Below are positions 6,658 to 59,468 of a stretch of DNA of 64,000 bases, one piece after another. Position 1 is the stretch's first letter. Each line of letters begins with the position of its first letter. Location of the stretch: the sequence record NC_048054.1; one strand, written 5' to 3'. The notes below the pieces were generated by a model, which saw nothing but the letters and a program-made list of their open reading frames with translations, was not told the DNA's origin and ran no database searches. The translations under genes and the position numbers were made by a program.

Positions 6658-6713
6658 TCTGCAAATAATAGGCTGAAATAGCTCTTTATACGCATACGCG
6701 CCTATGATACAAT
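6658..6713 (+). promoter_or_regulatory. sigma70-type promoter with conserved upstream element
   Basis: TCTGCAAATAATAGGCTGAAATAGC; 32 nt from AGGCTG to -10 TACAAT (6708-6713) with TG extension. Confidence 0.7.
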
Positions 6714-6751
6714 ATATGCAGACGCTACACGTCGTAGCGCATACAACACTC

Positions 6752-6765
6752 ATGCTAAGGAGCAT
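6752..6765 (+). promoter_or_regulatory. SD-in-loop hairpin
   Basis: ATGC-TAAGGA-GCAT upstream of ATG 6769. Confidence 0.65.
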
Positions 6766-6768
6766 ACA

Positions 6769-7473
6769 ATGAAAGCAGCAGATTTTGACAAAGCATTCAA
6801 CGCGAAAGACGAAGCAACCTTAACCGCATACGCTGACAAGATTGTTGCGGCACTTAACGCTCTCGGTCGCTATGACCTGAAACTTAAAATCATCTTCGGC
6901 ACCGACCCGTACGGCGAGTGTCCTGATTTTGTGAACGACCCTAATGGTCTGCGCGTTATTCAGAATGGCGAAGAAATTTTTGATATCTACACGCCGACTG
7001 AAAAACAGGTTGAAGGCGATTCGTCAGATGTTTTCGTCTACGCTTCGATCACTGGCGTTGAGGCCGCGAAGTGGGGCAAAGATGTTTCAGACAATGACAT
7101 TGCCGAACTTGCCGCTGACCTGAACGAAGAAATCGAACGTGTCGGCCGCGTGTTCGATGAATCTGATCGTCAGATGCTGCAAAAACTCGCCGACACTTTG
7201 AACGCTCGCATGGATCGTACAGATGCGCGGGTGATCGTAACGAACGGCGCCGAAGACGATCTGATTCTTATGGTTGTCGGCTATGATGTAGAAGAAGATG
7301 AAGTCAGTGACGAATACGGCTTCTTCTTATCGCTGCCGTATACTGATGTAGAAGGTACCGACGAGAAATACAGTCTGCACTACGCTGGCTACCCTGGCGT
7401 GAACGACCACTCATACAGCTCTGCTGACCTCGACGAGATCTCAGAAGAAATCGAATCCCTCGACCTGATGTAA
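6769..7473 (+). CDS. acidic hypothetical protein (234 aa)
   Basis: First gene after the 6658 promoter; D/E-rich throughout. Confidence 0.85.
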   Translation: MKAADFDKAFNAKDEATLTAYADKIVAALNALGRYDLKLKIIFGTDPYGECPDFVNDPNGLRVIQNGEEIFDIYTPTEKQVEGDSSDVFVYASITGVEAAKWGKDVSDNDIAELAADLNEEIERVGRVFDESDRQMLQKLADTLNARMDRTDARVIVTNGAEDDLILMVVGYDVEEDEVSDEYGFFLSLPYTDVEGTDEKYSLHYAGYPGVNDHSYSSADLDEISEEIESLDLM

Positions 7474-7480
7474 TCTACAC

Positions 7481-7529
7481 AAAACTGGTCAAAAGCGCCA
7501 TAGCAATGTGGCGCTCATTATCGTATGAT
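7481..7529 (+). promoter_or_regulatory. sigma70-type promoter with conserved upstream element
   Basis: AAAACTGGTCAAAA; 32 nt to -10-like TATGAT (7524-7529); inverted repeat GCGCCA/TGGCGC in the spacer. Confidence 0.55.
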
Positions 7530-7577
7530 GTAATCTCTAGCGCAATGACGCGCTCAACACTGAAAGAGGCAATAACA

Positions 7578-7817
7578 ATGGCTGAGAAACAAGTAGTTCT
7601 TGATCTGATCGCAGACGTGGCATCACCTACAGAAGTTATCTTTGAAGATGGTCAATCGTCTAATGAGTGGCTGGCGCCATACGATCTGCGTCTGACCGTG
7701 TCGCAGAACGAAGGGCCGAACGGCTACCCCGAAGTGAACATCATCGGCGATGAAGACAATCTGAAACGCTTCTTGTCTGAACAAGACCTTGAAGGTTCGG
7801 TCGAAGAAGTGAAGTAA
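7578..7817 (+). CDS. small acidic hypothetical protein (79 aa)
   Basis: Start revised to ATG 7578 (GAGG RBS). Confidence 0.8.
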   Translation: MAEKQVVLDLIADVASPTEVIFEDGQSSNEWLAPYDLRLTVSQNEGPNGYPEVNIIGDEDNLKRFLSEQDLEGSVEEVK

Positions 7818-7826
7818 AGTTGTTTG

Positions 7827-7853
7827 AGCGGGGCTTCGGCCTCGCTTCTTTTT
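7827..7853 (+). terminator. Rho-independent terminator
   Basis: AGCGGGGC-TTCG-GCCTCGCT then TCTTTTT. Confidence 0.85.
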
Positions 7854-7873
7854 ATTCTGCCTGAGATAAAACG

Positions 7874-8377
7874 ATGAAAACATCATACCTGATTATTCGC
7901 CTCAACGCCAAAGATATGTATGACCGTGAATTTTTAATGCGCGGCTTTAACGCAAAACGCATTGAGAAAGTTATCGGCGTTATCGCTATTGTAGGTGAAG
8001 GCCTGCTGACCGATGATTCTAAGATGTACCACCTGTCGCGTGTCGATATCAACCTGCTTGAGTCAGATACTCAACAAAGCTGGGCGCGTTTTAACTGGTC
8101 ATGTATTGACGACAACCTCATTGATTCTGGTATGCGCCGTTTGCCGACTGAGTTGCGCGATAGAATTACGGCGATGCGCACTAATCGCATTTATTGCGAA
8201 GTCGATACGGCTATACCAGAAGCGTTTCGTGATTGCCATACTAAGTTTGTGTATAAGTCACGCCCCGCACGTCTGTCGGTCAGTGACGAGAAAACAGGTA
8301 CGCTCGACGAGTTCACTGTAGAAGAAATCGTAGCTAACCTGAAGACGCGCATTAAAGGCGTCACCATCGCTTTCTAA
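7874..8377 (+). CDS. hypothetical protein
   Basis: 167-aa ORF; no motif recognised. Confidence 0.8.
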   Translation: MKTSYLIIRLNAKDMYDREFLMRGFNAKRIEKVIGVIAIVGEGLLTDDSKMYHLSRVDINLLESDTQQSWARFNWSCIDDNLIDSGMRRLPTELRDRITAMRTNRIYCEVDTAIPEAFRDCHTKFVYKSRPARLSVSDEKTGTLDEFTVEEIVANLKTRIKGVTIAF

Positions 8378-8439
8378 TCATCGTTTGACTGTGGCGTTAC
8401 GGCGCCACTTACTTCACAATCTAATCGAGAGAACATGCC

Positions 8440-9054
8440 ATGAATCTTATCAAAACTTTCTTCGCCAAACGCTCTTACGCTTCTCTGGCTGCTGGTAACT
8501 TCTCAATTGACGCCAAGCATGTACAGGAGCTGGTCGAATGTGAGTGCATGATCGTACACGTTGACACTGGCCATCGTAATGCGTTCGCGTTAAAGAACAT
8601 CTCTATCACACCTATCGACGAGCACAACGTTCGCATTACGTTCGATCCGCTGACCGACGCACACGCAATGCCTGTGACTGTCATGCCGAAAGATTTGAAA
8701 GGCAGCATTGATGTGTACGACATGTACGTAGAAGACCTGAAAGACGTACCGCGTTTCAACGTATCAAGTGACGCGTCAGGCAACAACCCAAACATTCTGT
8801 CGCTTGACCTTGAGAGTCGCCAGCGTTTCGTTCAATACTTCGGTGGTATGTGTACGCTGACTGACCTGTGCCTGACGCTGCACGACAAAGGCATTCACGT
8901 TGTCGATATTCACCATAACGTGAAGCAGCACGATCACGGCGTTGGCGTTTTCACTCAGCGCTACCGCACGGCATTCGAACTGAACAAAGACAACGGCATC
9001 AAACGCCACAACGATGACTTCCCTGTTCTGGCGCGCATGACCGTATTAATGTAA
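8440..9054 (+). CDS. hypothetical protein
   Basis: 204-aa ORF; no motif recognised. Confidence 0.8.
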   Translation: MNLIKTFFAKRSYASLAAGNFSIDAKHVQELVECECMIVHVDTGHRNAFALKNISITPIDEHNVRITFDPLTDAHAMPVTVMPKDLKGSIDVYDMYVEDLKDVPRFNVSSDASGNNPNILSLDLESRQRFVQYFGGMCTLTDLCLTLHDKGIHVVDIHHNVKQHDHGVGVFTQRYRTAFELNKDNGIKRHNDDFPVLARMTVLM

Positions 9055-9063
9055 ACACACATT

Positions 9064-9086
9064 GCCTCGCATTGAGCGGGGCTTTT
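9064..9086 (+). terminator. Rho-independent terminator
   Basis: GCCTCGC-ATTGA-GCGGGGC then TTTT. Confidence 0.65.
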
Positions 9087-9102
9087 CTATTTGGAGAATG
9101 CT

Positions 9103-9363
9103 ATGATTTACGAACGCGAAGAACTCGAAGACATGCCTCTCGATGTGCTTTATCATCTGGCGAGCGCCAAAGGTCTTCTGGACGATCTGGACGATGATGA
9201 CGATGCGCCTGATCGTGAAGTGCTGGTGGGCATGATTCTGGACGCCCAGAATGAAGACGAACAGGCAGAGCAAGATGCTGCCGACAAACAACGCGCCGAA
9301 GATGATCGCGACCCACGTATCAATCGTCGTGATGGTCAAGACGGCTCGGACGACTACTGCTAA
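9103..9363 (+). CDS. small acidic protein with Rho-N/HeH-like helical module
   Basis: Start revised to ATG 9103 (GGAG RBS); LEDMPLDVLYHLASAKGLL...DREVLVGMILDAQ follows the Rho N-terminal pattern L-x-x-M-x-L-x-x-L-x-x-L-A...R-x-x-L-V-x-x-I-L. Confidence 0.6.
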   Translation: MIYEREELEDMPLDVLYHLASAKGLLDDLDDDDDAPDREVLVGMILDAQNEDEQAEQDAADKQRAEDDRDPRINRRDGQDGSDDYC

Positions 9364-9367
9364 CACA

Positions 9368-9395
9368 AGGGCTGCCATTGCTGGTGGCCCTTTTT
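9368..9395 (+). terminator. Rho-independent terminator
   Basis: AAGGGCTGCCA...TGGTGGCCC followed by TTTTT. Confidence 0.75.
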
Positions 9396-9441
9396 CATTT
9401 CTGTAAATATCTCGTACACAAACAACAATGCGAGATATACA

Positions 9442-9810
9442 ATGCGCCGCTTCGTTATCGTCTTCAACGTCAGTCAGGCAGAGCTTGATGACCGCCGCTT
9501 CTTTCAGTCTAAGTTCAATATCGTTTCGTCACTGCGCCGCGCTCGCTGCGTCTTCCTCGTCGTTCGTGAAACCAAACAGGTGCTGTGTGTTTCAGAACTG
9601 ACCTATCAACCGAGCGTCGAGCCTGGCATTCGTCAGGTAGACTTCGATGCGCCGCGTGACGTAACAGCATACGTGCTGCCTTTCGCAGAACTCACCACAG
9701 CGATGATCAATAACTCGCAAGACCCGAGCATTCGTTACTTCGGCCGCAGCCTTGATATGGATATGGACCAGGCCAAACGCTTTCACACTCAACTGGAGAT
9801 TGTCCCATGA
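9442..9810 (+). CDS. hypothetical protein
   Basis: 122-aa ORF downstream of a TCTGTAAATA motif (9400). Confidence 0.75.
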   Translation: MRRFVIVFNVSQAELDDRRFFQSKFNIVSSLRRARCVFLVVRETKQVLCVSELTYQPSVEPGIRQVDFDAPRDVTAYVLPFAELTTAMINNSQDPSIRYFGRSLDMDMDQAKRFHTQLEIVP

Positions 9811-10052
9811 GTCAGACACTAGGCGCCTCGCTTGGCGCTCGCTTCGCTGTTACTTCTCAGGCCAACATTGAGAAGCGTAAGAAGCGCGATCCCAAAAACA
9901 GAACGCTGAGTTGTGCCGCTACCTCAGCGCAGCATGATGCTGTTGGTATACTGGCGAATAAACTCAACGTGTCTCGCTCTCGTGCAGTAGAGATCGCAGT
10001 TGAAGAACTGTTGGCTAAGCATGGCGTTAAGGTGCAGACCGACAATGAGTGA
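9807..10052 (+). CDS. ribbon-helix-helix (CopG-like) DNA-binding protein
   Basis: RTLSCAATSAQHDAVGILANKLNVSRSRAVEIAVEELL fits RHH beta-strand, helix A, S-R-S turn and helix B. Confidence 0.65.
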   Translation: MSQTLGASLGARFAVTSQANIEKRKKRDPKNRTLSCAATSAQHDAVGILANKLNVSRSRAVEIAVEELLAKHGVKVQTDNE

Positions 10053-10407
10053 CACGCACATCTACTGCAAGCTGTATGGCGTCCAGCACCGCTTAAAGAT
10101 CACGGCGTTCAACTTCATGAAGCAGCCGAACATGATCACGGTTGATTCGTCTGACGTGCTCAAGATGCTGCCGCTGATTAATGTCGGTGCAGCATACGAT
10201 ACGTACACGCCGTACAACGTACTCAAAGCTGGACGTGCTGACTTCAAAATCAAATTGATCGAGCGCACTGATGCGAACGTCTGGCGCTATGAGTTCGAAG
10301 ACTATCGTGGTCAACGCTTCGAAACGTACCTGATACGGAGACACTATGAAACGCCTCGGGATTGTAACGGTGTTGTCATTAAAGGACAAACAACCCAAAT
10401 CATGTGA
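10045..10407 (+). CDS. hypothetical protein
   Basis: Start revised to ATG 10045, overlapping the upstream stop. Confidence 0.75.
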   Translation: MSDTHIYCKLYGVQHRLKITAFNFMKQPNMITVDSSDVLKMLPLINVGAAYDTYTPYNVLKAGRADFKIKLIERTDANVWRYEFEDYRGQRFETYLIRRHYETPRDCNGVVIKGQTTQIM

Positions 10408-10981
10408 CCTCGATATCACGCCTGTATCGAAAGACGAAGAATGGGGCTCGCTGAGTCCCTTTCATTTAGGTCCGTGCAGAACGCCAGATGGCGTCATGTT
10501 TCACAACATGGAAAACTTGTGGCAGTACAGCAAGGTCTATGAAGAACATCTCGTCAATTCGAACGATCTATTTCACGGCGAGATTGCTGCCGACTGGTGG
10601 GCGTGGCATTTGAAAGGCAGTATGACAAAACAGGCGCATCGCTATCCTATGGGAAAAGGCCAAAAGGCTCTGTTCTCTAAATGGGGCGACTTGCGCCTTT
10701 CTTACGTTGCCGCACGAAAACAGATCTATGTGCCTGAGTACGCAAAGCTGGTGGTGCAGCAAAAGATGTTCAAACGTTTACTCAAGGAGTATAAGAAAGG
10801 CGCTCACATAGTTTTGCGCGACTATGACACCTACGATATCCAGAAGGCATATCCAGACGCACGTAGTCCCTGGATATCTGCCATTCAAAACAACAATGCT
10901 AAATTCGGACATGCGTTCGTTATTGCATTGGCCTTGCTCTTCCACGAACGACCACTATGGTACAACCAATGGGTGATATGA
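10346..10981 (+). CDS. NADAR-superfamily-like protein (putative ADP-ribose processing)
   Basis: GGAG RBS; LSPF...HNMENLWQYSKVY resembles the NADAR E-x-x-[YFW]-Q-x-x-K motif; also ARKQIYVPEY and GHA near the C-terminus. Confidence 0.5.
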   Translation: MKRLGIVTVLSLKDKQPKSCDLDITPVSKDEEWGSLSPFHLGPCRTPDGVMFHNMENLWQYSKVYEEHLVNSNDLFHGEIAADWWAWHLKGSMTKQAHRYPMGKGQKALFSKWGDLRLSYVAARKQIYVPEYAKLVVQQKMFKRLLKEYKKGAHIVLRDYDTYDIQKAYPDARSPWISAIQNNNAKFGHAFVIALALLFHERPLWYNQWVI

Positions 10982-11286
10982 AATACGAAGCCTGCATTGA
11001 TCTGTTCGAGCGTCAAGGTAACATGAACCTGCCTGTGCTTCCTAAATGCGAGCTACAGGCGACTCTATTTGATCGGTACACGAAGACGCGAATACCTGTT
11101 CGCTTCAACGCCACAAACGTGATCAAAGTTAAAGGCGTTACTTGTGGTAGTTTGCAGATCTTTGATAGCGTTAACCTTATTATCTGGTCATCGTTCGATA
11201 TTGGTCGCTTTACTTTATATATCGAACGGGTACGCAAAACAGACGAGCGCACAGAAGCCCTACAATCAGATGAACTCTGCAAATAA
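10978..11286 (+). CDS. hypothetical protein
   Basis: Start revised to ATG 10978 (ATGA overlap). Confidence 0.7.
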   Translation: MKYEACIDLFERQGNMNLPVLPKCELQATLFDRYTKTRIPVRFNATNVIKVKGVTCGSLQIFDSVNLIIWSSFDIGRFTLYIERVRKTDERTEALQSDELCK

Positions 11287-11331
11287 CTGGTCAAAATAGC
11301 CATTCTTTTTAGTACCAGTCTATGATATAAT
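11276..11331 (+). promoter_or_regulatory. sigma70-type promoter with conserved upstream element
   Basis: TCTGCAAATAACTGGTCAAAATAGC; 32 nt to perfect TG-a-TATAAT (11326-11331). Confidence 0.8.
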
Positions 11332-11361
11332 AAAAGCGAGCGCTATTGCTCAAAACAACAC

Positions 11362-11375
11362 AAGCTGAGGAGCTT
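11362..11375 (+). promoter_or_regulatory. SD-in-loop hairpin
   Basis: AAGC-TGAGGA-GCTT upstream of ATG 11379. Confidence 0.65.
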
Positions 11376-11378
11376 AAC

Positions 11379-11696: not shown

Positions 11697-11741
11697 GATT
11701 TGTGAAGGGCCTTCGACGAGGGTCCTTTGAAAATCAAACCA

Positions 11742-11757
11742 TGTTCTGAGGAGAACA
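11742..11757 (+). promoter_or_regulatory. SD-in-loop hairpin
   Basis: TGTTC-TGAGGA-GAACA upstream of ATG 11761. Confidence 0.7.
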
Positions 11758-11760
11758 ACA

Positions 11761-12641: not shown

Positions 12642-13094
12642 ATGGAAATGTTTGATCGCTCAAACGTGATTAAAGCAATCATGCGTAACCTGAAAGATGC
12701 GCGGAGAATAGAAGACATACGCACGTTCGACGACAAGGTATACTTCAAAGTTAACGGCGTAGGCTACTTTGTCACTGGTAACTATCCTAATCTGAAAGTT
12801 GTATCTCGCGGTCAGTATGACCAAGAGATGATGAACCAACTCAACTATGTTTATAGGCGCAAGAAGGGTGTAGAAGAAGATACGCCAATGCGCATAGCAC
12901 GTACCACTCGCAATCTTACGCTTACGCAGATAGCAAAAGAGCTTGGTATGGACCCAGGCAATCTGAGTCGAATCGAACGAGGTATGCAGATACCTTCTAT
13001 GGAACTGGCGGAACGTATCGCCGCGTATTTCGATAACACAATAACAGCAATTCAAATTTGTCATCCGACTTATAAGGGGAATCCAAATGCTTGA
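12642..13094 (+). CDS. XRE/Cro-CI helix-turn-helix protein with an N-terminal domain shared with the next gene
   Basis: C-terminal MRIARTTRNLTLTQIAKELGMDPGNLSRIERGMQIPSMELAERIAAYF is a typical XRE HTH. Start uncertain (12642 or 12648). Confidence 0.8.
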   Translation: MEMFDRSNVIKAIMRNLKDARRIEDIRTFDDKVYFKVNGVGYFVTGNYPNLKVVSRGQYDQEMMNQLNYVYRRKKGVEEDTPMRIARTTRNLTLTQIAKELGMDPGNLSRIERGMQIPSMELAERIAAYFDNTITAIQICHPTYKGNPNA

Positions 13095-16614: not shown

Positions 16615-17028
16615 ATGGAGAAGACGTACATGACACACTGGGGATCGCGCTATGTGAGATCTCCCACAGGCAAGTGGTACTCGGTTCATGGGCGTGAGGG
16701 TGCATGGGTAACGAATCGCTACGGCACCTCATTCTATCGTAGCGGCTCCGAAGTATGGCGAGACATATCTCCTGCCTCTTGTAGGAATCTGGAGCGTGAG
16801 TTACTCAAACGAACTCGCAGTGACTTCAAGGATAGTAAGAACAAGTACAATCAGTGGGGCAAGGTAGTGCTGACGATTGCTCGTCAGTCAGAAGAAGAAA
16901 AGAATCCCCACACGTCAGAGCTTGCTGAGATGCTCGAAGCGCTTAGACAGACTTTCTACGGACAGAAGGTACAGCAACTAAGCACAATTCTGGACGAAAT
17001 AGGTCTTACAAGCAGATATCGTTCGTGA
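16615..17028 (+). CDS. hypothetical protein
   Basis: 137-aa ORF. Confidence 0.7.
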   Translation: MEKTYMTHWGSRYVRSPTGKWYSVHGREGAWVTNRYGTSFYRSGSEVWRDISPASCRNLERELLKRTRSDFKDSKNKYNQWGKVVLTIARQSEEEKNPHTSELAEMLEALRQTFYGQKVQQLSTILDEIGLTSRYRS

Positions 17029-17077
17029 TATAATAGAGATGAACGCTAGACACTCGTTTAGCTACTTACATGAGGAT

Positions 17078-19561: not shown

Positions 19562-20040
19562 TGCCACGCATGTTCACTGAGACTCACCGCAATAAGCATT
19601 TCCGTGATCGCAACCATCCTGAGTATCACGGTGATGTGTGCGAGCGCATTCATCTTGAAGGTATGGAAACGCTGAAAGATCTGAAATACTATCAGGCTGC
19701 AATTGCGTTGAAGCGCCGTAGCTCCCCGCATCGTGTGCGTCGTACTGTTGAATCCCAAACATGGGATCAACTGTGTCAGTCCAGAGGAGAACGACACGAT
19801 ATCTCCTATCTGCGCTCTATGGTCAAAGCAACGGCCGCGCGTATGAAGGCAATTCGTGTCGCATACACCGAAGAGCATTCAAAGCGGCACAATCAACCAC
19901 TGCGTTTTGAAGTGAAAGACGCAGATGGTAATCGCGTTGATTTGTTCGTGACATACGATGCTGCCAACCACTGTAAACTACGCTCAGGGCTTGGTGCCAC
20001 ACTCAATCGCTACGAGGAAAAAGAAATAAAATGGCTGTAG
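19561..20040 (+). CDS. hypothetical basic protein
   Basis: TAATG overlap with GGAG RBS favours 19561 over 19546. Confidence 0.75.
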   Translation: MPRMFTETHRNKHFRDRNHPEYHGDVCERIHLEGMETLKDLKYYQAAIALKRRSSPHRVRRTVESQTWDQLCQSRGERHDISYLRSMVKATAARMKAIRVAYTEEHSKRHNQPLRFEVKDADGNRVDLFVTYDAANHCKLRSGLGATLNRYEEKEIKWL

Positions 20041-20294
20041 GTTTTGTCAAAGACGATGGTGTGAACGATACCATCGAAACAAACGTGCTGAACGAGATTG
20101 ACCGCGCTCGTTCAGAACTTCAAGGCGTAGGCTCCGACTACTGCATCAACCCTGATTGTGGTGAAAAGATTCCTGTGATGCGCAAACTCGCCATGCCGAA
20201 TGCGCGTTACTGCATTAACTGTCAAGCAGCGCACGACGGCACTGCTAACGTCGGCTACAATCGCCGTGGTTCAAAAGATTCCCAGCTGAGGTAA
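20031..20294 (+). CDS. ybiI: DksA/TraR-family C4 zinc-finger protein, YbiI-like
   Basis: CINPDCGEKIP..RK.AMPNARYCINCQ; the C-terminus GYNRRGSKDSQLR matches E. coli YbiI as I remember it, and the N-terminal GFVKDDGVND parallels GWANDDAVNE. Confidence 0.85.
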   Translation: MAVGFVKDDGVNDTIETNVLNEIDRARSELQGVGSDYCINPDCGEKIPVMRKLAMPNARYCINCQAAHDGTANVGYNRRGSKDSQLR

Positions 20295-25028: not shown

Positions 25029-26009
25029 ATGAGATTCGGATTCGCCTGTAAGCTGCTTGACGCAAACGACAAACAACCATACACCAACAAGAGCCTTAGC
25101 TATAAACACTTCTCGGCGCTGTCTGCACCTGACCAGCACGATAAACTTATTGCTGTTGTCACGCACAATCTGACTTCGCTACTTAACATGATCAAACACG
25201 TTGGTCGTCTGCGTACCGATCTGCGTATGTTCCGAATCACAAGTGAGTTACTTCCTTTGTACACTCACCCAAAAGTGTTCCACATGTACATGCGCCATGA
25301 CGTCGCAGCCCTAACCGAAAAGATGTTAGCACTCTGTGGTGCGGCGGCTCGTCGTCTTGACGTTCGCCTCTCTTTTCACCCAGGTCAATTCACTGTGCTC
25401 GCGTCTGATCGTCCTGACGTTGTGGAAAATTCAATTCGTGAACTTGAGTACCATGCGTATTGTGCCTACCACATGGGATACGGTCGACGCTTTCAGGACT
25501 TCAAGATCAACATTCACCTCAGTGGTAGACTTGGTGCAAAAGGCTTTCGTGCATCACATTCGAAACTTTCTGACCACTGCCGTAAGATGTTAACCGTAGA
25601 GAACGACGAGATCACTTCCAGTCTCGAAGATTGTTTAGAGCTGGCAGACATATGCCCGATCGTCCTCGACATTCATCATCACTGGGTTATGACAAACGAA
25701 TACATACAGCCGACCGATGATCGTGTTAAGCGTGTCATTGACTCTTGGCGAGGTGTTCGCCCAACTGCTCACTACTCTGTGTCTAAGCCAGAGTTCGTGC
25801 CGTCTCGTGGTCTGCCTGATCAGAATAAGCTGACCGCTAATCGTATGCAGCTACGCGCACACTCTGATTACTACCACAACGACGACGTAAACGACTGGGC
25901 CCTCAGCTTCACTGATTTTGACCTGATGTGCGAGTCAAAAGCGAAGAATAGAGCGCGAGTCAAATTGGCGTGTTTTAACGTCAACTCTGCAAATAAATGG
26001 ACAAAATGA
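25029..26009 (+). CDS. uvsE: UV damage endonuclease (UvsE/UVDE)
   Basis: RFGFACK, FRITSELLP, RLSFHPGQF, ELEYH, INIH, LTVENDE, VLDIHHH, HSDY, DLMCESKAK. Confidence 0.95.
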   Translation: MRFGFACKLLDANDKQPYTNKSLSYKHFSALSAPDQHDKLIAVVTHNLTSLLNMIKHVGRLRTDLRMFRITSELLPLYTHPKVFHMYMRHDVAALTEKMLALCGAAARRLDVRLSFHPGQFTVLASDRPDVVENSIRELEYHAYCAYHMGYGRRFQDFKINIHLSGRLGAKGFRASHSKLSDHCRKMLTVENDEITSSLEDCLELADICPIVLDIHHHWVMTNEYIQPTDDRVKRVIDSWRGVRPTAHYSVSKPEFVPSRGLPDQNKLTANRMQLRAHSDYYHNDDVNDWALSFTDFDLMCESKAKNRARVKLACFNVNSANKWTK

Positions 26010-26042
26010 GGCTTGTTTGCGATATTCGACCTGTGATACACT
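25986..26042 (+). promoter_or_regulatory. sigma70-type promoter with conserved upstream element
   Basis: TCTGCAAATAAATGGACAAAATGAGG; TTGTTT -35-like; 33 nt to TG-a-TACACT (26037-26042). Confidence 0.7.
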
Positions 26043-26097
26043 GTTTATGAGCACTTTCGCTCGTTTTTCTCATATAACTAGACAGAGGAAATAAGAC

Positions 26098-28234: not shown

Positions 28235-29407
28235 ATGAACGATATCGCCAGTATTGCCCGCAGCATTTTCGAACGTGGTACTATCGAGCAACGTGATGCG
28301 TTACGCGCAGTTGCGAATACCGTACTCGTGCCTTCCATGCGACTCTCCTATGAAGTCGCCGAACCTACGGTTGAAGAAACGTATCGCCTCCTTGAAGGCA
28401 TCGCGTTCACAGGCGACGGCAAGATGATGCTGCCTGGTGACGAGATCTATGCGCTCGATTCTCTTTTGAACAAAGAGTGGAAGAAGACTTTCTTCGAAGC
28501 TGTTGCGAACATGACGCTTACCATGTATTGCACAGACCCGCATACCGCAGGCAAAGGCTTCTGGCCTAAGAGCAACAATGATTGTTGCGAGTTTATTACG
28601 CGGGCCTTTATCTGGATGCTCACTCAGCACGGTCTGACCAATATTCTGGTGCGTGATACGAGCGTCGTAAGTCATACGCGTCTGCCGCAGTTTATCATTG
28701 CGTTGCAGACAGAAGGTAAAGATGATGGCTATGCGCGTCATTTCAGTTTGTATGATCCGTATTCTGATTCAGGCAATATCACTGTTTCTAACTTGTGGTC
28801 TGAGGAATACAAAGCTGCCAGAGTGAGTGAGACTCTTGCAGGCCGTCCGCCTGAATACGATGCGGTTCGCCATATGAATTTCGATGATCTTGCAGATCTG
28901 TGTGAGCGACTGGAACTCATTGCAGTGAAGTCTGACTCGAATTGCGATTGTGACGACGATGACTGCGAATGCGACGAGCTGGTAACTCGCCATGACCTCG
29001 ACCGCGACCCAGATGATCTGCGTGAAATCTTCTACGCCAAGTATGGCGACCCTGACGACGAAGGCGTTGTCGATGAAGAAGACTGGATCACAGGCGCTTC
29101 ACTCATGGAAGTTGAAATCAATCTGCCGATTGTCACTCTGCACAAGCCCGTGCCTAAAACGAATATGCCAAGATCTGGGCATATGAAAATGAAAAAGCCG
29201 ATGGCGAAATCGACTAACAAGAGTCGCGTCGTTTTGAACCACGACCAGCAGATTTGGCATGAGCTGGATGAAAAGCAAGAGTTCGGTGATCGCCGTTTTG
29301 CTATTACTCTCGTATCACGTCATACGTGCGGCATCAATCGCCCTGTCGCAACGAACAACGAAGCGCTGGCTATCGCATACGCCCTGTTAGCGTTAGACAG
29401 CAAATAA
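28235..29407 (+). CDS. hypothetical protein with a Cys/acidic insert and a helical module
   Basis: 390 aa; MNFDDLADLCERLEL...CDCDDDDCECDE...DPDDLREIF. Confidence 0.8.
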   Translation: MNDIASIARSIFERGTIEQRDALRAVANTVLVPSMRLSYEVAEPTVEETYRLLEGIAFTGDGKMMLPGDEIYALDSLLNKEWKKTFFEAVANMTLTMYCTDPHTAGKGFWPKSNNDCCEFITRAFIWMLTQHGLTNILVRDTSVVSHTRLPQFIIALQTEGKDDGYARHFSLYDPYSDSGNITVSNLWSEEYKAARVSETLAGRPPEYDAVRHMNFDDLADLCERLELIAVKSDSNCDCDDDDCECDELVTRHDLDRDPDDLREIFYAKYGDPDDEGVVDEEDWITGASLMEVEINLPIVTLHKPVPKTNMPRSGHMKMKKPMAKSTNKSRVVLNHDQQIWHELDEKQEFGDRRFAITLVSRHTCGINRPVATNNEALAIAYALLALDSK

Positions 29408-29452
29408 CTGGTCAAACTAGCGCTTCAATTCGAGGCGCTTTTCTGCTATAAT
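29400..29452 (+). promoter_or_regulatory. sigma70-type promoter with conserved upstream element
   Basis: GCAAATAACTGGTCAAACTAGC; 32 nt to TG-c-TATAAT (29447-29452); inverted repeat AGCGC/GCGCT in the spacer. Confidence 0.75.
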
Positions 29453-29519
29453 CATAGCTAGAGCAATATCGCTCTCAACGTCATTTTTAACCATACGTTT
29501 ATAACGGGAATTGTCATTT

Positions 29520-33502: not shown

Positions 33503-34444
33503 ATGACTAAAATGGCTGCTCTGCCTTTCGCTGATTCTGCCCAGCGTAACCGCTATTTCGCTGAGAGCATTCGCGCTCTTAAACTTAACTCTGTTTGGGA
33601 CTATGTTGTGTCAAACAATAACCCAAACTGGAAAGGCGATCCGTTGCTGCGCCATATGCACTATCACTCCACTGAGCACATGAAGCAGGTCACAGCTCTG
33701 GCTCTTTGGTTGTTGTACAGAGAATCGCAGCATACGTGGCAGTATGATGCAGGCGCATTGCCTTTGGCCGTTGCCTGCATGTTTCACGACATGGACCATT
33801 CACTCGGACGCCTCAATGATGAAGCTAATATTCGTCAGGCGCAGGATGCTTTTAGGAAGTATCTGACAGTGTGCGATGACGACCGCATCAAAGACCACGC
33901 GGAAATCATTCTCGACTTGATAGACATTACGCGGTTCCCTTACATGAAGAACCGTCAGCCGAAAAATCTGATCGAACGTTGCATTCGTGACGCCGATATT
34001 CTATATGGCATGCAGGACGATGCTCTGGATATCGTGATGTTCTCGCTGCGCCGAGAAGTGAATCGCAATGTAAATGAAAACGTTTACTTCCAGGCAGACG
34101 TGTGGGCACAAGGCCGCGTTGACTTCCTTCGCAGTGTTGAAATCTACTGCCCTACTGCTGATGCAATTATGGAGTGGCTGCTGTCAGAGGACAACGACCA
34201 CAATCATCAAGATCGAATCGACGACTGGATGGCACACGAAGTTAGTTTCCGTGATACGTTTGCACAGAAACTCGAAGTCAATGACGTGCTGTTCATCGAC
34301 ACTGAGGAAGACAGTACGCCTAAGCGCCGACTGATCAAACAGATTGAAGACATTGGTGAAGGCTTCAACGTCGTATTCGACGGTGATGAAGGTGTCTATC
34401 TGCGCAATGGTGAGGGTTGTGTGATCGTCGAAAGACGCAAATAA
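33503..34444 (+). CDS. HD-domain phosphohydrolase with C-terminal beta-rich domain
   Basis: YHSTEH...CMFHDMDH...IRDADI gives the H..HD..D metal-binding pattern. Confidence 0.8.
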   Translation: MTKMAALPFADSAQRNRYFAESIRALKLNSVWDYVVSNNNPNWKGDPLLRHMHYHSTEHMKQVTALALWLLYRESQHTWQYDAGALPLAVACMFHDMDHSLGRLNDEANIRQAQDAFRKYLTVCDDDRIKDHAEIILDLIDITRFPYMKNRQPKNLIERCIRDADILYGMQDDALDIVMFSLRREVNRNVNENVYFQADVWAQGRVDFLRSVEIYCPTADAIMEWLLSEDNDHNHQDRIDDWMAHEVSFRDTFAQKLEVNDVLFIDTEEDSTPKRRLIKQIEDIGEGFNVVFDGDEGVYLRNGEGCVIVERRK

Positions 34445-34489
34445 TAGGCTGAAATAGCCATACTGTCTAAAGTGCACCTGTGATAAAAT
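34438..34489 (+). promoter_or_regulatory. sigma70-type promoter with conserved upstream element
   Basis: CAAATAATAGGCTGAAATAGC (same variant as 6658); 32 nt to TG-a-TAAAAT (34484-34489). Confidence 0.7.
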
Positions 34490-34521
34490 ACGCGTAGACG
34501 CACTAACAAAGAGAAAACGAT

Positions 34522-38477: not shown

Positions 38478-38777
38478 ATGGCTGATAAACTGACGTTGGT
38501 ACCGAATGTCGCTATCGTCCTAAAGATGAACGAGCGCCGTTCCTTCTTGGGGCCGAAAGAAGATGGGTTTGTCTATCTGGCGAGCAAGGAAGCGCTCGAT
38601 AAATTCGAGGCGCATATCCTGCGTTACCGCAGCCGCGAAGAATACTCCGAGATAGACGAGCGTGAATTACGCGCTCTGACAGACGACGGTGTTCGGGCTT
38701 TGAGTCATGCAGTCAAAGAAGACCCAGAACGCCCATGGCTGTGGACAAAGACAGACTTCCGCAAGAAGCTCTGGTAA
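38478..38777 (+). CDS. hypothetical protein
   Basis: 99-aa ORF, GAGGTG RBS. Confidence 0.8.
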   Translation: MADKLTLVPNVAIVLKMNERRSFLGPKEDGFVYLASKEALDKFEAHILRYRSREEYSEIDERELRALTDDGVRALSHAVKEDPERPWLWTKTDFRKKLW

Positions 38778-38781
38778 GCAT

Positions 38782-38830
38782 AAAACTGGACAAAACAGCG
38801 GTAGTATCTGAAAGCGTCCTATGATACAAT
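38782..38830 (+). promoter_or_regulatory. sigma70-type promoter with conserved upstream element
   Basis: AAAACTGGACAAAACAGC; 32 nt to TG-a-TACAAT (38825-38830). Confidence 0.75.
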
Positions 38831-38864
38831 AGAAGCGTAGCTTGTGCTGCGCTTTTATAACATA

Positions 38865-38878
38865 TGTCTGAGGAGACA
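38865..38878 (+). promoter_or_regulatory. SD-in-loop hairpin
   Basis: TGTC-TGAGGA-GACA upstream of ATG 38884. Confidence 0.65.
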
Positions 38879-40863: not shown

Positions 40864-41079
40864 ATGAGCCGACGTCCTACACAAGATGAAGTGAACGGCC
40901 AGATAGCTGCCGCCGAAGAACAGCGCTACAATGAGCGTGAAGCGCGTTATGCTGATATGTCAGATGACGATCTACGCGATGCTCTGTTGGAGCAGGGTCT
41001 CGTTTTTGTCGAAGGCGACGACGTAGACGACTACAGCCGACAAGACTGTATCAGACTGCTTATGGCGAGCGGCTACTGA
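40864..41079 (+). CDS. small acidic protein with HeH-like module
   Basis: Start revised to ATG 40864; MSDDDLRDALLEQGL...YSRQDCIRLL. Confidence 0.7.
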   Translation: MSRRPTQDEVNGQIAAAEEQRYNEREARYADMSDDDLRDALLEQGLVFVEGDDVDDYSRQDCIRLLMASGY

Positions 41080-41082
41080 GCA

Positions 41083-41132
41083 TAAATCTGGACAAAATGA
41101 GGATTGTCTCAAAACAGCGTCCGTGATACAAT
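41083..41132 (+). promoter_or_regulatory. sigma70-type promoter with conserved upstream element
   Basis: TAAATCTGGACAAAATGAGG; TTGTCT-17 nt-TACAAT (41127-41132); 32 nt from TGGACA. Confidence 0.8.
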
Positions 41133-41138
41133 ATAGAG

Positions 41139-41310
41139 ACAGCGAGACATGTTCTCTCTGTGATGTGCCTATAACGTTTTGACCGTGTGTTTATCTTTTC
41201 CCGGGCACACGGTCCTTTTAAAGCCGCTTCCTGTGAGGCTGTTTTAAAAAGGGTTCGATACCCTTTGAGCGCGTCGGGCTTTACGCGGTTTCCGCCTGCC
41301 GTGCTCTCAT
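41139..41310 (+). ncRNA. candidate structured non-coding RNA or long 5' leader
   Basis: About 195 non-coding nt after a strong promoter with five consecutive hairpins, including a 12-bp stem (41181-41192/41203-41214) and a T-arm-like AAGGG-TTCGATA-CCCTT (41249-41265). Confidence 0.45.
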
Positions 41311-41333
41311 GCTAAACCGCAAAGGAAATAGAT

Positions 41334-42723: not shown

Positions 42724-42740
42724 ATCTGCGAAGTATGCAG

Positions 42741-42790
42741 AAAACTGGACAAAATCGTGGTTGTTATCTGACGGCCACCTATGCTATAAT
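42741..42790 (+). promoter_or_regulatory. sigma70-type promoter with conserved upstream element
   Basis: AAAACTGGACAAAAT; TTGTTA-18 nt-TATAAT (42785-42790) with TG extension; 33 nt from TGGACA. Confidence 0.8.
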
Positions 42791-42827
42791 AGATTCAGAC
42801 GCAATAGTGCGTCACACACAAAAACAC

Positions 42828-54215: not shown

Positions 54216-54248
54216 GCAAGTAATCGCACACTAGCGGTCACTTGATCG

Positions 54249-54280
54249 AAAGGGCAGCGCTGACGAGCGTTTGCCCTTTT
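54249..54280 (+). terminator. Rho-independent terminator
   Basis: AAAGGGCA-GCGC...GCGT-TTGCCCTTTT. Confidence 0.8.
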
Positions 54281-54312
54281 GTCTTATCTACACGAATTTT
54301 CGAGGTAATGCC

Positions 54313-54813: not shown

Positions 54814-54837
54814 TACTAACCTGATAGGATTGAGACA

Positions 54838-55578
54838 ATGGGCCAGAAACTGTCTGAACAAATCAACCGCTATTTTAATCTCATGGAAAAAATCCGTGAG
54901 CAAATGTACCGCGTCCTGCCAGTCAGTGATCGCTATCTGTGTGTCGTAAGTTTCAGCACACAACTCCAGGCACTCCAGTGTGTACTGGTGAGTAAGGCCT
55001 CGTTAATGGAAGCAAAGCTGATCGAAGGGCTAACGGGTCAAGAGCTGGTGACGTATGGCCAGTACCTGCGAACTGCCGAAGAGTGGGTTGCTAACGGTAT
55101 GCAGGACGATTATCCGTTCACTCAGGACAAAGACGTGTATGCCGAGTACCGCAGCCTGACGCGCGATGACTCTCAGCCTGTACCTGAAATGGACGACGAA
55201 GAAGACCTCGACGAACAAGAGCTGGATAACCTGCGCACCTCAATTCTCTGCTCAGACAAAGCCACCCTGATGCAGATGTATGCAGATGAAAATCTCGGCA
55301 CAAAAGCCAAAGCCGCTGACATGGATGCGGAGCAATTGCAGGAAGCTCTGTGTGAACACTACGGTCTTAACCCTGATGTTCCTGTCAGACTGGTCGATGT
55401 TGTTGGCGAAATGGTTAAGCGCATTGAAAGCCTTCCGAATCATGCTGCCCTCAAAGAAGTTGATCTCCTGACTAAGGAAGAACTGCTTAGTCTCGCAGAC
55501 GCGTGGGACATTGAAAAGACAGCGCATGAGCACACTATGCGCTCTCTTGTTAAGGGCTATCTGCTGCGCCGTACCTAA
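54838..55578 (+). CDS. hypothetical protein with C-terminal HeH-like modules
   Basis: SDKATLMQMYADENLGTKAKAADMDAEQLQEALCEHYG and LTKEELLSLADAWDI. Confidence 0.8.
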   Translation: MGQKLSEQINRYFNLMEKIREQMYRVLPVSDRYLCVVSFSTQLQALQCVLVSKASLMEAKLIEGLTGQELVTYGQYLRTAEEWVANGMQDDYPFTQDKDVYAEYRSLTRDDSQPVPEMDDEEDLDEQELDNLRTSILCSDKATLMQMYADENLGTKAKAADMDAEQLQEALCEHYGLNPDVPVRLVDVVGEMVKRIESLPNHAALKEVDLLTKEELLSLADAWDIEKTAHEHTMRSLVKGYLLRRT

Positions 55579-55585
55579 TTCAAAC

Positions 55586-55641
55586 TCTGCAAATAACTGG
55601 ACAGATTGCGGGTATATAAGAATAGTCTTATGTGATATAAT
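55586..55641 (+). promoter_or_regulatory. sigma70-type promoter with conserved upstream element (topoisomerase operon)
   Basis: TCTGCAAATAACTGGACAGA; 32 nt to TG-a-TATAAT (55636-55641). Confidence 0.8.
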
Positions 55642-55715
55642 AGCGTCAGACAAGCAGTGTCTGAAATTGCTAATATCGAGTAGTCCACACGATACTCACT
55701 CAGGAGAATACGAAA

Positions 55716-57746
55716 ATGGCCAAAGCGCCTAAAGCTGCCAAAGTTAAAAAGAAAACGGGAGATGGGTCCGAACAAGAAGGATTCATGATTGCCGAAGGCC
55801 TTGATGGTATTCGTCTAAATCCCGGGATGTACATGGGGGAACGCGGTGCCGATATGGCTTACCGTGCGGTTAAAGAGCCAGTTGATAACGACTATGATGA
55901 ATACATCGCAGGCCGAAACAAACTTATCGAAGTGGTCATCGACTACGATAACGACCTGAACGTTGTTGCCGATATGGCGAAAGGTATTCCGACCGACTTC
56001 AAGAAACTGAAAGACGGTTCGAAAGAAACGATCATGACCGCAGCGTTTAGCCGAGCACACGCTGGTGGTAAGTTCGACGATAAAGCATATAAGACCTCTG
56101 CTGGTACTCACGGCGTAGGCGTTGCAGCACTGAACGCAATTTCAAGTCGCCTGCGTGTATGGTCAATGTACAAAGGCGGTTGTGCGTATCAGATGTGGGA
56201 GTGCGGTGTCGCCAAGTCAGGCAAAGACCCGAAACAGGTTAAAGCAGTAGACAAAGATGTTATGAGCCTACTGCGTGAAAAGAAACACAGCAAGTACGGT
56301 ACGATTGTCGCATGGACTCTCGACCAGACTGTTGTGTCTGCTGACGTACAGCGCGGTAAGAAGCTGCCGAAGAACTATCGTCACGCTGCGCCAGACCCAG
56401 CACAGCTTGGTTCATGGTTGCGTAATATGTCTATGCTCAACCCAGGTCTTGAAGTCCGCCTGACGTTGATCAAGAAAGGCAAGCGCAAAGAGTTCACCTT
56501 CCTCAACAAGAAAGACTTGGCACACGTTGTTAAGACGATGGTTGAAGAACGCGAGCTTGGCTCAGTTGGTAAGCCGTTCATCTTCAAGAACGACAACATC
56601 ACCGCTGCGCTGACATGGACCGACCATGCAGACACAGACAACTTCCTGTCTTTCGTTAACACCAGCCCGACAATTGACGGCGGCTGGCACGTTGTTGGTT
56701 TCCGTGATGCGTTGTTCGAAGCAATTAAGCCTTTCATGAAAGAGCCGAAAGGTAAGAGCAAGAAGAAGCAGGGCTTCAAACAAGAAGACTTGCTTATCGG
56801 CCTGACTGGCATGTTCGACTGGCGTATGCACGGTGCTCAGTACACCTCGCAGGTTAAAGACAAGCTGGCGAGCCGTGTCGAAAAAGAAGTGTACGAAATG
56901 CTGAAAGATGCTTTCGTGAAATACTTCAAAGAGAATAAGAAGGTCGCAACCACGATCATCAAACGCGCCGAAGCGATGAACAAAGGCCGTGAAGAATTGT
57001 CGGCTGTCGTGAAGTCGATGGCAGACACGAAGAAAAAGCTGAAAGGTAACGCACTGCCTGCTGACCTCGTAGTCGCCAACAAATGTAAGCCGCATGAGCG
57101 TGAGCTTGTCGTGGTGGAAGGGGACTCTGCTGGTGGTACTGCGAAAGATGCGCGTAACCCTGACTATCAGGAAGTTATGAAAGCTGGCGGTAAGCCGCTT
57201 AACGGTCTGAAAGCGTCACTGGCTGATGTGCTCAAGCACAAAGAAGTGCAGGGCATGTTGGTATCTATCGGTGCTGACCTGAAATCGTTAGACCCGAAAG
57301 CAGAAGCGCCTCAACTCAGCACGAAGAATCTGCGTATCGGCAACATCCTGTTCCTTGCAGATGCTGACCCTGATGGCTTCCACATCAACGTGCTGTTCCT
57401 GGGTGTTATCTATCGTCTGCTGCCTGACCTGATGAAAGAAGGGCGTGTGTGGATTGTAGACGCTCCGCTGTACAACGTCATTCACAACGGCAAGCACTAC
57501 GGTGGCATGACCTTTGAAGAATGCCGCAAGAAAGCACCTGCTGCCGTGAAAGACAAAGATATCATTCGCGCAAAAGGTTGGGGTGAAGTTGAGCCTGACA
57601 TTCTTGAAGCGATTGCATTCAATCCGAAGACGCGCCGACTCATTCGTGTTAACCCGTTTGAGAACGCTGAACAAGAGCGTTTCTTCCGCGGCGTTGTAGC
57701 AGAAGATGCAGTGCACCGTCGTCGTTTACTTGGTCTGGAGAGCTAA
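55716..57746 (+). CDS. gyrB: type IIA topoisomerase ATPase/TOPRIM subunit (GyrB/ParE-like)
   Basis: GHKL motifs [29 protein letters not shown]; [30 protein letters not shown]. Confidence 0.95.
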
Positions 57747-57747
57747 C

Positions 57748-59394
57748 ATGGCAGTTAAGCCGAAGAAAGTTAAAGTCGTGAAGAAAGCGACTGCGGTAGC
57801 GAAGCCCGCTAAGGTGAAAGTCAAATCGAAAGCTGTTGCTGTCGATGACATGCCGAAGAAAAAGAAGAAAAGCGAAGTATCGGTTGCAGGCGCTATCACT
57901 TCCCTCTATCCGATGCTTGGTCAGGACGAGGCCAACATTCGTGATGAAGGTCTTGCTGACTATACGCGCCGCGCTCTTGGTGTGTATGGCTCTTACGTTG
58001 TTGAAGACCGAGCTATCGCTGACTATCGTGATGGCCTCAAGCCAGTTCACAGGGCGCTACTCTGGTCCATGTGTGACTTGAGCTTGCGTCCAAGTTCTGC
58101 GTTCAAGAAAGCGGCTCGTACTGTTGGTGACACAATCGGTAAGTATCACCCACACGGTGACCAAGCGTGTTACGGTGCGATGGTGACGATTGCAAACACA
58201 GTGCCTCCTGCTGTAGCTGGTCAAGGTAACTGGGGCCGTCCTGATGACCCAGCCGCAGCAATGCGTTACACAGAAGCGCGTATGTCGAAGTTCACCGGTG
58301 CGTTCCTGCTCGACCCTGACTATCTCGAAGTTGTGCCACGCGTACCGAACTTCTCAAACGATCTTGAGATACCGCTGTATCTGCCTGCGCTTATGCCGTA
58401 CATGTTGTTCAACGGCTCAGTACCTGCACCAGCATATGGTGTTAAGTGCGGTAACCCGTCGTTCAGCTTTACGTCTGTCAGTAAGGTCGTGTGTGAGATG
58501 CTGAACGGCAAAGAGTACACAGCGAAGAAGCTGGCCGATGCTCTTGAGATTCGTCATGAGTTCGGTTGTCTGGATGTGTCGTCTGATGAAGACCACTTCC
58601 AGCTTATCTCTACAGGCAAAGGCAAAGTGACGTATGAGCCAGTGATGAAGATTGACGAGAAATCGAAAATCATCACCGTTCAGACGTATGTGCCTGGTGG
58701 CATGGCGAACACTGCTGGTATCACGAAGAAGCTGGAGAAGATTGCAGAGTGGCAAGGTGTTGTCTCTGCTGCTAACGCCTCTGGTAAGAAGAACAAGAAC
58801 GCGGGCCCGTATGGTGCGGCGTTTGAGATCAAAGTTCGTGGCTCAGAAGACACGCTGTATGAAATCGCAAGCAAGGTGCAGAAGGAAATCACCGCAGCGA
58901 TCAACTACACGTTGGGTGTAACCATTCGTCGTGCTGACGCCAGTAACAAGTTCAAGTACCTGAACTACCTCGAATACTTCAAAGCGTGGATTGCGTACCG
59001 CATCAAGCTGGAAGTTCGTATGCTGGAGAACAAGCTGGCGAAAGCGGAGCGAGCGTTGCACATTCAGCAAGTCTATCTGTGGGCAGTGGACAACATGGAC
59101 AAACTGCTTAAGGTGCTGCCGAAAGTTCTGGTTGCATCTGACCCTGACGCAACGCTTGCGAAGCTGTGCAAGATTCCTGTTGATGATGCGAAAATCATCC
59201 TCGACCGTCAGGTGCGTAAACTGGCTAAACTGGAACGTGCTGGTCTGCTGGCCAAGATTAAAGAAATCAAGGCCGAGATTGCTGAATACAAAGGCGGTCT
59301 GAAAGAACCAGGCAAATACGCTGCGGCAAGCACTGCTGTAAAAGTTAAGGCGTATCTCAAGTCTCCAGACGATAAGCTGCCTGTAAGTCTTTGA
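57748..59394 (+). CDS. gyrA: type IIA topoisomerase breakage-reunion subunit (GyrA/ParC-like), no C-terminal pinwheel
   Basis: Start revised to ATG 57748; [35 protein letters not shown] (catalytic Tyr); 548 aa including a Lys-rich N-terminal extension. Confidence 0.95.
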
Positions 59395-59422
59395 GAAATC
59401 TGTAAATACAACTAAGCATATT

Positions 59423-59468
59423 CCTGGACGAAACGTGGTTGTATCAGAATAGTCTTATATGATATAAT
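59423..59468 (+). promoter_or_regulatory. sigma70-type promoter with conserved upstream element
   Basis: CCTGGACGAAA; 32 nt to TG-a-TATAAT (59463-59468). Confidence 0.75.

Follow-up and report, generated by a model that had tools for sequence, protein, structure and literature searches.

Most jumbo phages carry no RNA polymerase (RNAP) of their own, and the ways in which they capture that of the host have hardly been studied. The question arises for Dickeya phage vB_DsoM_AD1 (genus Alexandravirus; isolation host, Dickeya solani MK10), a jumbo myovirus of 261,658 bp, in the last 64,000 bp of its genome (genome positions 197,659-261,658, to which the DNA analyzed here, referred to as the window, is identical). 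In this window, a conserved 22-nucleotide (nt) upstream element, which we call U, recurs at a fixed distance in front of an extended -10 box; are these sites promoters, and if so, which polymerase and which sigma factor read them? On balance, we think it likely that they are twelve copies of one modular cassette (class A) used by host RNAP with its primary sigma factor, most likely as the early promoters of AD1 and its relatives. Coordinates are window positions unless marked as genome positions.

Detection of the composite motif

The initial annotation had described eleven promoter-like cassettes with an extended -10 box, a description that was borne out. All eleven -10 hexamers were found where it had placed them, with a TG dinucleotide in front of ten (7524 being the exception), an AGGCTG variant of the core at two sites (6708 and 34484), and a distance from core to hexamer of 32 nt at nine sites and 33 nt at two (26037 and 42785), which corresponds to an offset of 45 or 46 nt from the start of U to the -10 block. 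A two-block position-weight matrix (PWM) scan of the whole 261,658-bp genome returned 12 composite sites, the twelfth of which (U at 16979-17000, -10 at 17029-17034) was absent from the earlier list; all 12 are on the + strand and within the window, and none is on the - strand. U scores are bimodal, ranging from 18.8 to 31.8 at the 12 sites and reaching at most 15.5 at all other positions. Sixteen strong extended -10 boxes (score of 11 or more) are present on the + strand, 11 of them 45 or 46 nt downstream of a U; the -10 box of the cassette at 7474 is weaker than this class, and no U occurs without a -10 box.

Because the weight matrices were derived from the sites themselves, we added a search with a skeleton of the invariant bases, CA.A.....GG....A.......T-N19/20-TG.TA...T. 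This skeleton matches the window nine times with N19 and twice with N20, on the + strand only, whereas 0.01 and 0.00 matches, respectively, are expected from dinucleotide-preserving shuffles. The core alone (TGGWCAAAA with one mismatch) is scarcely enriched, with 49 occurrences observed against 31.6 expected; the unit that exceeds chance is the composite and not the core alone. The cassettes are invariably co-oriented with genes and lie upstream of them. Throughout the window, genes run on the + strand, as part of a + strand block that runs from 182.3 kb across the record end to 44.3 kb (genome), and the structural genes of AD1 form a single long - strand block. We found no prior account of this element in the literature on AD1 or Alexandravirus promoters; a mention in the Y3 or Lu11 genome papers is possible.

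Anatomy of the cassette

To describe the cassette, 87 instances from nine Alexandravirus genomes were pooled, which contain 49 different versions each of U and of the -10 block and 71 different spacers. With the hexamer set at -12 to -7, the -10 block has the consensus TRTGnTAyAaT: T-12, A-11, and T-7 are invariant in 49/49 distinct blocks, T-15 is present in 46/49 and G-14 in 44/49, and 11 of the 12 AD1 sites have the TG at -15/-14. At all informative positions, class A agrees with the extended -10 consensus of enterobacterial sigma70. In 70 of the 71 distinct spacers, a T stands exactly 27 nt past the start of U, often followed by T or A and then G, which we interpret as the probable first base of a weak -35 hexamer. 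Only this first T is fixed; TTG is present at about half of the sites, and the -35/-10 spacer is 17 or 18 bp. A weak -35 is usual for extended -10 promoters. The -35 had earlier been called variable and often poor; it is indeed weak, but the constant T shows that it is not variable in position. Since it is U, and not the -10, to which this T keeps a constant distance, the difference between 32 and 33 nt amounts to the ordinary 17/18-bp variation of the -35/-10 spacer.

U itself extends from about -62 to -41, beyond the reach of sigma region 4, as had been proposed. Within Alexandravirus, C-58, A-57, G-49, G-48, and A-43 are invariant, and A-55, G-59, A-53, A-44, and A-42 nearly so; the core reduces to WGGNYR. 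Two A-tracts, at about -57/-52 and -45/-42, have their centers near -54.5 and -43.5, i.e., about 11 bp or one helical turn apart. The subsites of bacterial UP elements span -58 to -37 (PMC2613000), and U occupies this position at a constant distance from the -35 T. We also considered whether TGGACA could be the -35 hexamer of a second, upstream promoter and rejected this, as a -10-like hexamer is found 17 bp downstream at 2 sites only. Comparison by eye with the sites of the host factors IHF, Fis, CRP, LexA, DnaA, sigma54, and MarA/SoxS gave no convincing fit to U; the marbox shares GCA...AAA with it, with a spacing that is 2 bp too long.

Conservation and distribution

Eight other Alexandravirus genomes, 82-94% identical to AD1 in the region, have the cassettes in syntenic positions, always on the gene strand. 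Across the nine genomes, pairwise identity computed by column reaches 1.0 at the U invariants, at the -35 T, and at the -10 T/A/T; in the spacer it is 0.55-0.8, and for the upstream flank it is about 0.5-0.6. The leader columns served to select orthologues and are not independent in this profile. Among the orthologues of one site, three genomes have the core AGGCTG, two have TGGACA, and another has TGGTCA, so these three forms are interchangeable. PWM scanning revealed the same architecture, in the same register to the -35 T, in three further genera: the U core is mostly AGGCTR in Erwinia phage Y3 (Sasquatchvirus), TGGTCA in Yoloswag (Yoloswagvirus), and TGTCCA in Dickeya phage JA29 (Salmondvirus), in which the -10 boxes are weaker and the TG is often absent. 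The U cassette was not found in 63 kb of Pseudomonas phage Lu11. A blastn search with a 30-nt U probe returned Alexandravirus only, which reflects its limited sensitivity, since the PWM scan later showed the three additional genera.

When the exact degenerate U pattern was scanned over one genome each of 185,579 prokaryotic species, 34 scattered hits were obtained, none of them in Enterobacterales. A -10 at the correct distance was present only on three small contigs of one metagenome-assembled genome labeled "Raoultibacter sp." (JAVWLC010000071.1, JAVWLC010000053.1); these contigs, with complete U plus -10 cassettes, are almost certainly mis-binned Alexandravirus-like phage DNA. The element had been termed phage-specific, and this is correct in one sense only, namely, that a single clade of jumbo phages has it and host chromosomes lack it. 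As a separate observation on the distribution of the phage, public metagenome runs from food, plants, fungi, and wastewater contain up to 72% of the words sampled from positions 55400-59900; close relatives of AD1 appear to be widespread in the environment. The public runs with AD1 DNA are metagenome and metatranscriptome contigs, whose ends carry no information on RNA 5' ends and among which conserved topoisomerase sequence from other organisms acts as a contaminant.

Phage sigma factor and a second promoter class

No RNAP subunits are found among the annotated genes of AD1, and the Pfam models for the beta/beta' catalytic domains (RNA_pol_Rpb2_6 and Rpb1_2) have no match in its genome, with the caveat that such genes can be very divergent; the Pfam model for T7-type RNAP has no match either, a weak blank, as the same model matched none of the control genomes. 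Jumbo phages without RNAP need host RNAP and phage sigma factors, according to a recent review (PMC13282480), and the PaBG/Lu11-like group, which includes AD1, is characterized by such a sigma (PMC7412058). We therefore dropped the idea that the cassettes are early promoters for a phiKZ-like virion RNAP, given that RNAP genes are neither annotated nor detected and that AD1 belongs to the sigma-encoding PaBG/Lu11 group. The sigma factor of AD1, gp237 (PHROG 17569), is very divergent: it has none of the Pfam sigma domains, and its sequence matches that of no sigma with a solved structure; a domain search of the AD1 genome did not detect Sigma70_r4. A further gene that may touch on transcription is gp271 (20031-20294), which encodes a DksA/TraR-type C4 zinc-finger protein (Pfam E value, 4e-9) and has a counterpart annotated at the syntenic position in Y3, JA29, and Yoloswag; gp271 may modulate host RNAP via the secondary channel.

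Intergenic k-mer enrichment yielded U and a second motif, (A/T)CTGTAAA(T/C)A (class B, CTGTAAATA). In the genome, CTGTAAA(T/C/G) has 53 gene-sense and 3 antisense occurrences, distributed over both strand blocks; positions in the window include 1905, 2699, 9401, 27332, 48296, 48476, 51005, 51873, 52528, and 59400. Class B sites typically lie 25-50 nt ahead of a start codon, often directly past a terminator, and have no conserved element upstream. The GenBank record of Lu11, whose sigma is 36% identical to gp237, labels the identical motif "putative middle/late promoter," and class B is over-represented on the sense strand in relatives. Because the motif tracks the phage sigma across Pseudomonas and Dickeya hosts, it is the natural target of gp237, and class B is likely read by this factor. 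By elimination, and because of its match to the consensus, class A is then the candidate host-sigma70 class. The possibility that U is a variant of class B was rejected: TCTGCAAATA and TCTGTAAATA are one base apart, yet U does not conserve the CTG portion and class B occurs without U, so the similarity is treated as coincidence or distant ancestry. The -10 boxes CTGTAAACT and CTGTAAAAT of JA29 could similarly be seen as hybrids of U and class B; as the T at -7, the mark of class A, is retained in them, they were not used as evidence. In the divergent region between the two strand blocks (genome 182184-182282), there is in addition a promoter-like CTGACA-N15-TATGTT.

Proposed mechanism

If class A is read by host RNAP with sigma70, sigma regions 2 and 3 would engage the extended -10, sigma region 4 would engage the weak -35 through its fixed first T, and U, locked to the -35, would recruit or position the C-terminal domains of the alpha subunits (alpha-CTDs), directly or via an additional factor. 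Contact with U together with the extended -10 could make these strong promoters that are largely independent of the -35, which would help the phage to out-compete host promoters and would keep them active if sigma region 4 were later disabled. Transcription is predicted to start 6-8 nt past the hexamer with a hairpin at the 5' end, and the transcripts would encode mainly small orphan genes, along with topoisomerase II and a radical-SAM enzyme. Orphan status is typical of early genes, and the first genes downstream of the cassettes are orphans with no Pfam hits.

Four observations weigh against this reading. A generic sigma70 two-hexamer scan recovers just 4 of the 12 sites. Every class A promoter is located downstream of the sigma gene (genome 194154), in front of which stands a class B motif alone, so that the temporal wiring is incomplete. 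UP elements are A/T-rich and degenerate, with no specific G or C, and U is atypical in this respect in that C-58, G-49, and G-48 are invariant, although its A-tracts fit. Finally, the U core differs by genus (TGGWCA/AGGCTG in AD1 and TGTCCA in JA29) despite the shared isolation strain, D. solani MK10; as the host strain is the same, a purely host-determined optimum does not predict such genus-specific cores.

Who reads U

The last two of these points bear on how U is recognized. Direct reading by alpha-CTD is favored by its position, its fixed register to the -35, the A-tracts one turn apart, the precedent of T4, and the lack of a candidate factor. It is possible, albeit doubtful, that U is instead the site of a phage-encoded protein, perhaps delivered with the DNA, acting as a class I activator that touches alpha-CTD or as a repressor of early promoters, with the core promoter still read by host sigma70. 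Such a dedicated factor would suit the asymmetric conservation of about 20 bp with invariant G/C positions and high copy-to-copy similarity, the concerted change of the core between AD1 and JA29, the absence of U from bacterial chromosomes, and its restriction to one clade among phage records; recombination among cassettes, however, can also give concerted differences between genera, and orthologous sites tolerate TGGACA, TGGTCA, AGGCTG, TGGCTA, and AGGATG, which leaves scarcely more than "GG" as a specific contact. The initial annotation had suggested a class I activator or an alpha-CTD/UP-like site, and as to position this stands, as U lies where both act, and involvement of a modified holoenzyme, a further suggestion made there, is conceivable; no activator candidate was found in the genome, in which AraC-type helix-turn-helix (HTH), MotA C-terminal (MotCF), and Alt/ModA-type ADP-ribosyltransferase domains have no match. 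The XRE gene gp258 (12642-13094), the sole HTH gene in the region, is unlikely to encode the reader of U: it is unannotated in pEa_SNUABM_17 and pEa_SNUABM_32, which keep all cassettes, and its orthologues elsewhere are mostly unlabeled. The DksA/TraR-like family of gp271 binds RNAP and not DNA. A more specific version, which we offer as a speculation and regard as rather improbable, is that U is read by a protein of the PaBG-like enterobacterial jumbo phages (at least four genera), possibly injected, that docks RNAP via alpha-CTD on -35-poor promoters and whose specificity co-evolves with the core of each genus (TGGWCA, AGGCTR, or TGTCCA). If true, this would be a new route by which a polymerase-less giant phage captures host RNAP.

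Two further explanations dispense with host sigma70 or with transcription altogether. The cassettes could be middle promoters read by host core RNAP with gp237 in place of sigma70, since some relatives annotate gp237 as "RpoD subfamily," a sigma70-like factor could retain the preference for TATAAT and TG, and genes of delayed-early type, such as topoisomerase II, lie downstream. We consider this unlikely: beyond the divergence of gp237 noted above, the motif common to the whole sigma-bearing clade, Lu11 included, is class B and not class A, class A fits the enterobacterial consensus, and no recognizable host-type promoters would be left for the start of infection. Less likely still, at the margin of what we would entertain, U might be conserved as a recombination linker with no role in transcription, through shuffling and homogenization like that of the promoter-early-stem-loop (PeSL) cassettes (PMC2839356, PMC4122927). 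Between AD1 and its eight relatives, 14 of 142 clusters of homology breakpoints fall inside cassettes against 2% expected, a five-fold enrichment relative to a null that is uncorrected for intergenic location, and cassette-plus-gene modules differ in presence or absence among relatives. Homogenization nevertheless leaves unexplained both the invariant single positions beside varying neighbors at orthologous sites and the fact that four genera share one exact spacing to the -35 T; in any case, a linker is compatible with a promoter role, the two not being exclusive.

Gene context and leader hairpins

The coordinates of the twelve cassettes are given in Table 1. U overlaps or directly adjoins the upstream stop codon at seven sites; for example, the TAA of U in cassette 3 is the stop codon of gp254, and the first TAA of U in cassette 8 is that of gp303. 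At one more site, cassette 4, U is within the end of gp266, and the TG of the -10 belongs to the TGA stop codon; orthologues of cassette 4 are present in 8/8 relatives. A terminator hairpin directly precedes cassette 1. At two sites a hairpin lies between U/-35 and the -10, namely, at 29419-29439 in cassette 6, which makes a good intrinsic terminator of gp289, the gene upstream, and at 7496-7515 in cassette 2.

TABLE 1 Positions of the class A cassettes and their parts in the 64,000-bp window
Cassette	Span	Strand	U	-35	-10	Leader hairpin	Downstream gene (start)
1	6658..6743	+	6658-6679 (AGGCTG variant)	TTTATA 6685-6690	6705-6713 (extended)	6715-6743	gp245 (6769)
2	7474..7569	+	7474-7495	7501-7506	TATGAT 7524-7529 (no TG)	7534-7569	gp246 (7578)
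3	11276..11351	+	11276-11297	11303-11308	11323-11331 (extended)	11338-11351	gp255 (11379)
4	16979..17062	+	16979-17000	17006-17011	17026-17034 (extended)	17045-17062	gp267, radical-SAM gene (17084)
5	25986..26064	+	25986-26007	TTGTTT 26013-26018 (18-bp spacer)	26034-26042 (extended)	26047-26064 (with T-run)	gp284 (26098)
6	29397..29475	+	29397-29418		29444-29452 (extended)	29460-29475	gp290 (29520)
7	34434..34501	+	34434-34455 (AGGCTG variant)	34461-34466	34481-34489 (extended)		gp297 (34522)
8	38775..38856	+	38775-38796		38822-38830 (extended)	38831-38856 (strong)	gp304 (38884)
9	41077..41161	+	41077-41098	TTGTCT 41104-41109	41124-41132 (extended)	41139-41161	gp309 (41334)
10	42734..42813	+	42734-42755	TTGTTA 42761-42766 (18-bp spacer)	42782-42790 (extended)	42798-42813	gp312 (42847)
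11	55586..55671	+	55586-55607		55633-55641 (extended)	55642-55671	gp324-325, topoisomerase II genes (55716)
12	59400..59514	+	59413-59434 (class B CTGTAAATA at 59400)		59460-59468 (extended)	59478-59514	gp326 (59741)

A leader hairpin is present at 11 of the 12 sites, cassette 7 being the only one without a convincing example, and starts 1-11 nt past the hexamer, at or beside the predicted 5' end of the RNA. The leaders have a mean folding z score of -1.8, with lower energy than genomic (P = 0.006) and intergenic (P = 0.012) windows by the Mann-Whitney test. The hairpin sequences vary from site to site; what the leaders share is structure and not sequence. A 5'-terminal stem-loop is a known type of mRNA stabilizer, and by analogy these hairpins probably stabilize the transcripts. 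In several leaders the ribosome binding site lies in the loop of a small second hairpin (11364-11378 and 38865-38877), where CTGAGGAG is flanked by complementary bases, and CA-rich leaders (CAACAC, ACACAAACAA) are common in both promoter classes.

Two cassettes are followed by long gene-free leaders. Behind cassette 9 is a structured leader of 201 nt ahead of gp309. Its stretch of 195 nt at 41139-41333 has no convincing open reading frame and no Rfam match, and its fold has a z score of -4.1 relative to shuffles; given the hairpin and T-run at 41226-41245, this stretch could yield an early small RNA of about 105 nt or else act as a structured leader. Cassette 12 has a class B motif directly upstream of U, such that tandem promoters of both classes stand in front of a structured leader of 272 nt ahead of gp326, of which the 266 nt at 59475-59740 are highly structured (z score, -3.9).

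Implications

The two classes provide a promoter map for the clade of Alexandravirus, Sasquatchvirus, Yoloswagvirus, and Salmondvirus, consisting of a putative host-type class with U and a short CTGTAAATA motif for the phage sigma, which would help to annotate genes and operons better in about 50 phages with sequenced genomes. With 22 bp, few invariant bases, and natural variants, U is a convenient experimental handle, and it could bring to light a phage transcription factor not seen before or else show that alpha-CTD reads more than the classical UP consensus. For genetic work in Dickeya and Erwinia, the cassettes offer compact candidates for strong promoters.

Comparison with known systems

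Among jumbo phages, the early promoters of the phiKZ and AR9 virion RNAPs (PMC7598289) are likewise highly conserved, AT-rich, centered on the -10, and confined to one strand, but AD1 has no detectable multisubunit RNAP genes, and its motif fits the host sigma70 consensus including the TG and the -35 T. An analogy with the MotA/AsiA middle promoters of T4 had also been drawn, and the two do share a sigma70 -10 combined with a phage-specific upstream motif; on closer inspection, however, the analogy is not supported. In T4 the -35 gives way to the MotA box at about -30, whereas in AD1 the -35 T (often TTG) is kept at normal spacing with nothing replacing it, the motif is 15-25 bp farther upstream, and no MotA homologue was found. 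Bacterial UP elements such as that of rrnB P1 (PMC2613000) similarly lie directly upstream of the -35 in a fixed register, and the two A-tracts about 11 bp apart match their subsites; U differs from them in its invariant C-58 and GG at -49/-48, its genus-specific core, and a much higher conservation from copy to copy.

By analogy, the closest described systems appear to be the early promoters of T4 and the PeSL cassettes. The former have been described as "uber UP/-35/TGn/-10" with extra conserved positions, and their use is modulated by the injected Alt enzyme (Hinton 2010, PMC2988021). Like the AD1 cassettes as we read them, they are host sigma70 dependent, combine an upstream element in the alpha-CTD zone with a -35, a TGn, a -10, and extra conserved positions, and occur in many copies before small early genes of a large lytic myovirus with its own late sigma; the T4 late motif TATAAATA and AD1 CTGTAAATA are in turn both short and -10 only. 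On the other hand, AD1 belongs to the unrelated PaBG/Lu11-like lineage, has a much weaker -35, and encodes no detectable Alt/ModA-type enzyme; its U has a defined sequence with invariant G/C in place of a generic A/T-rich tract. PeSLs of T4-like phages consist of a strong sigma70-like promoter with an A/T-rich upstream region and a stem-loop, stand before orphan genes, and serve as recombination linkers (PMC2839356, PMC4122927). The AD1 cassettes resemble them as units of about 100 bp, in which a sigma70-like promoter of putative early type is joined to an A/T-rich upstream region and a stem-loop and which recur ahead of orphan genes in variable regions, in the enrichment of breakpoints, and in the overlap of promoter and terminator seen at 29419-29439 and 7496-7515. 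They differ in that they occur in another phage family and in that the hairpin usually lies past the -10 at the RNA 5' end, mostly without a T-run, and is thus more like a 5' stabilizer than a terminator.

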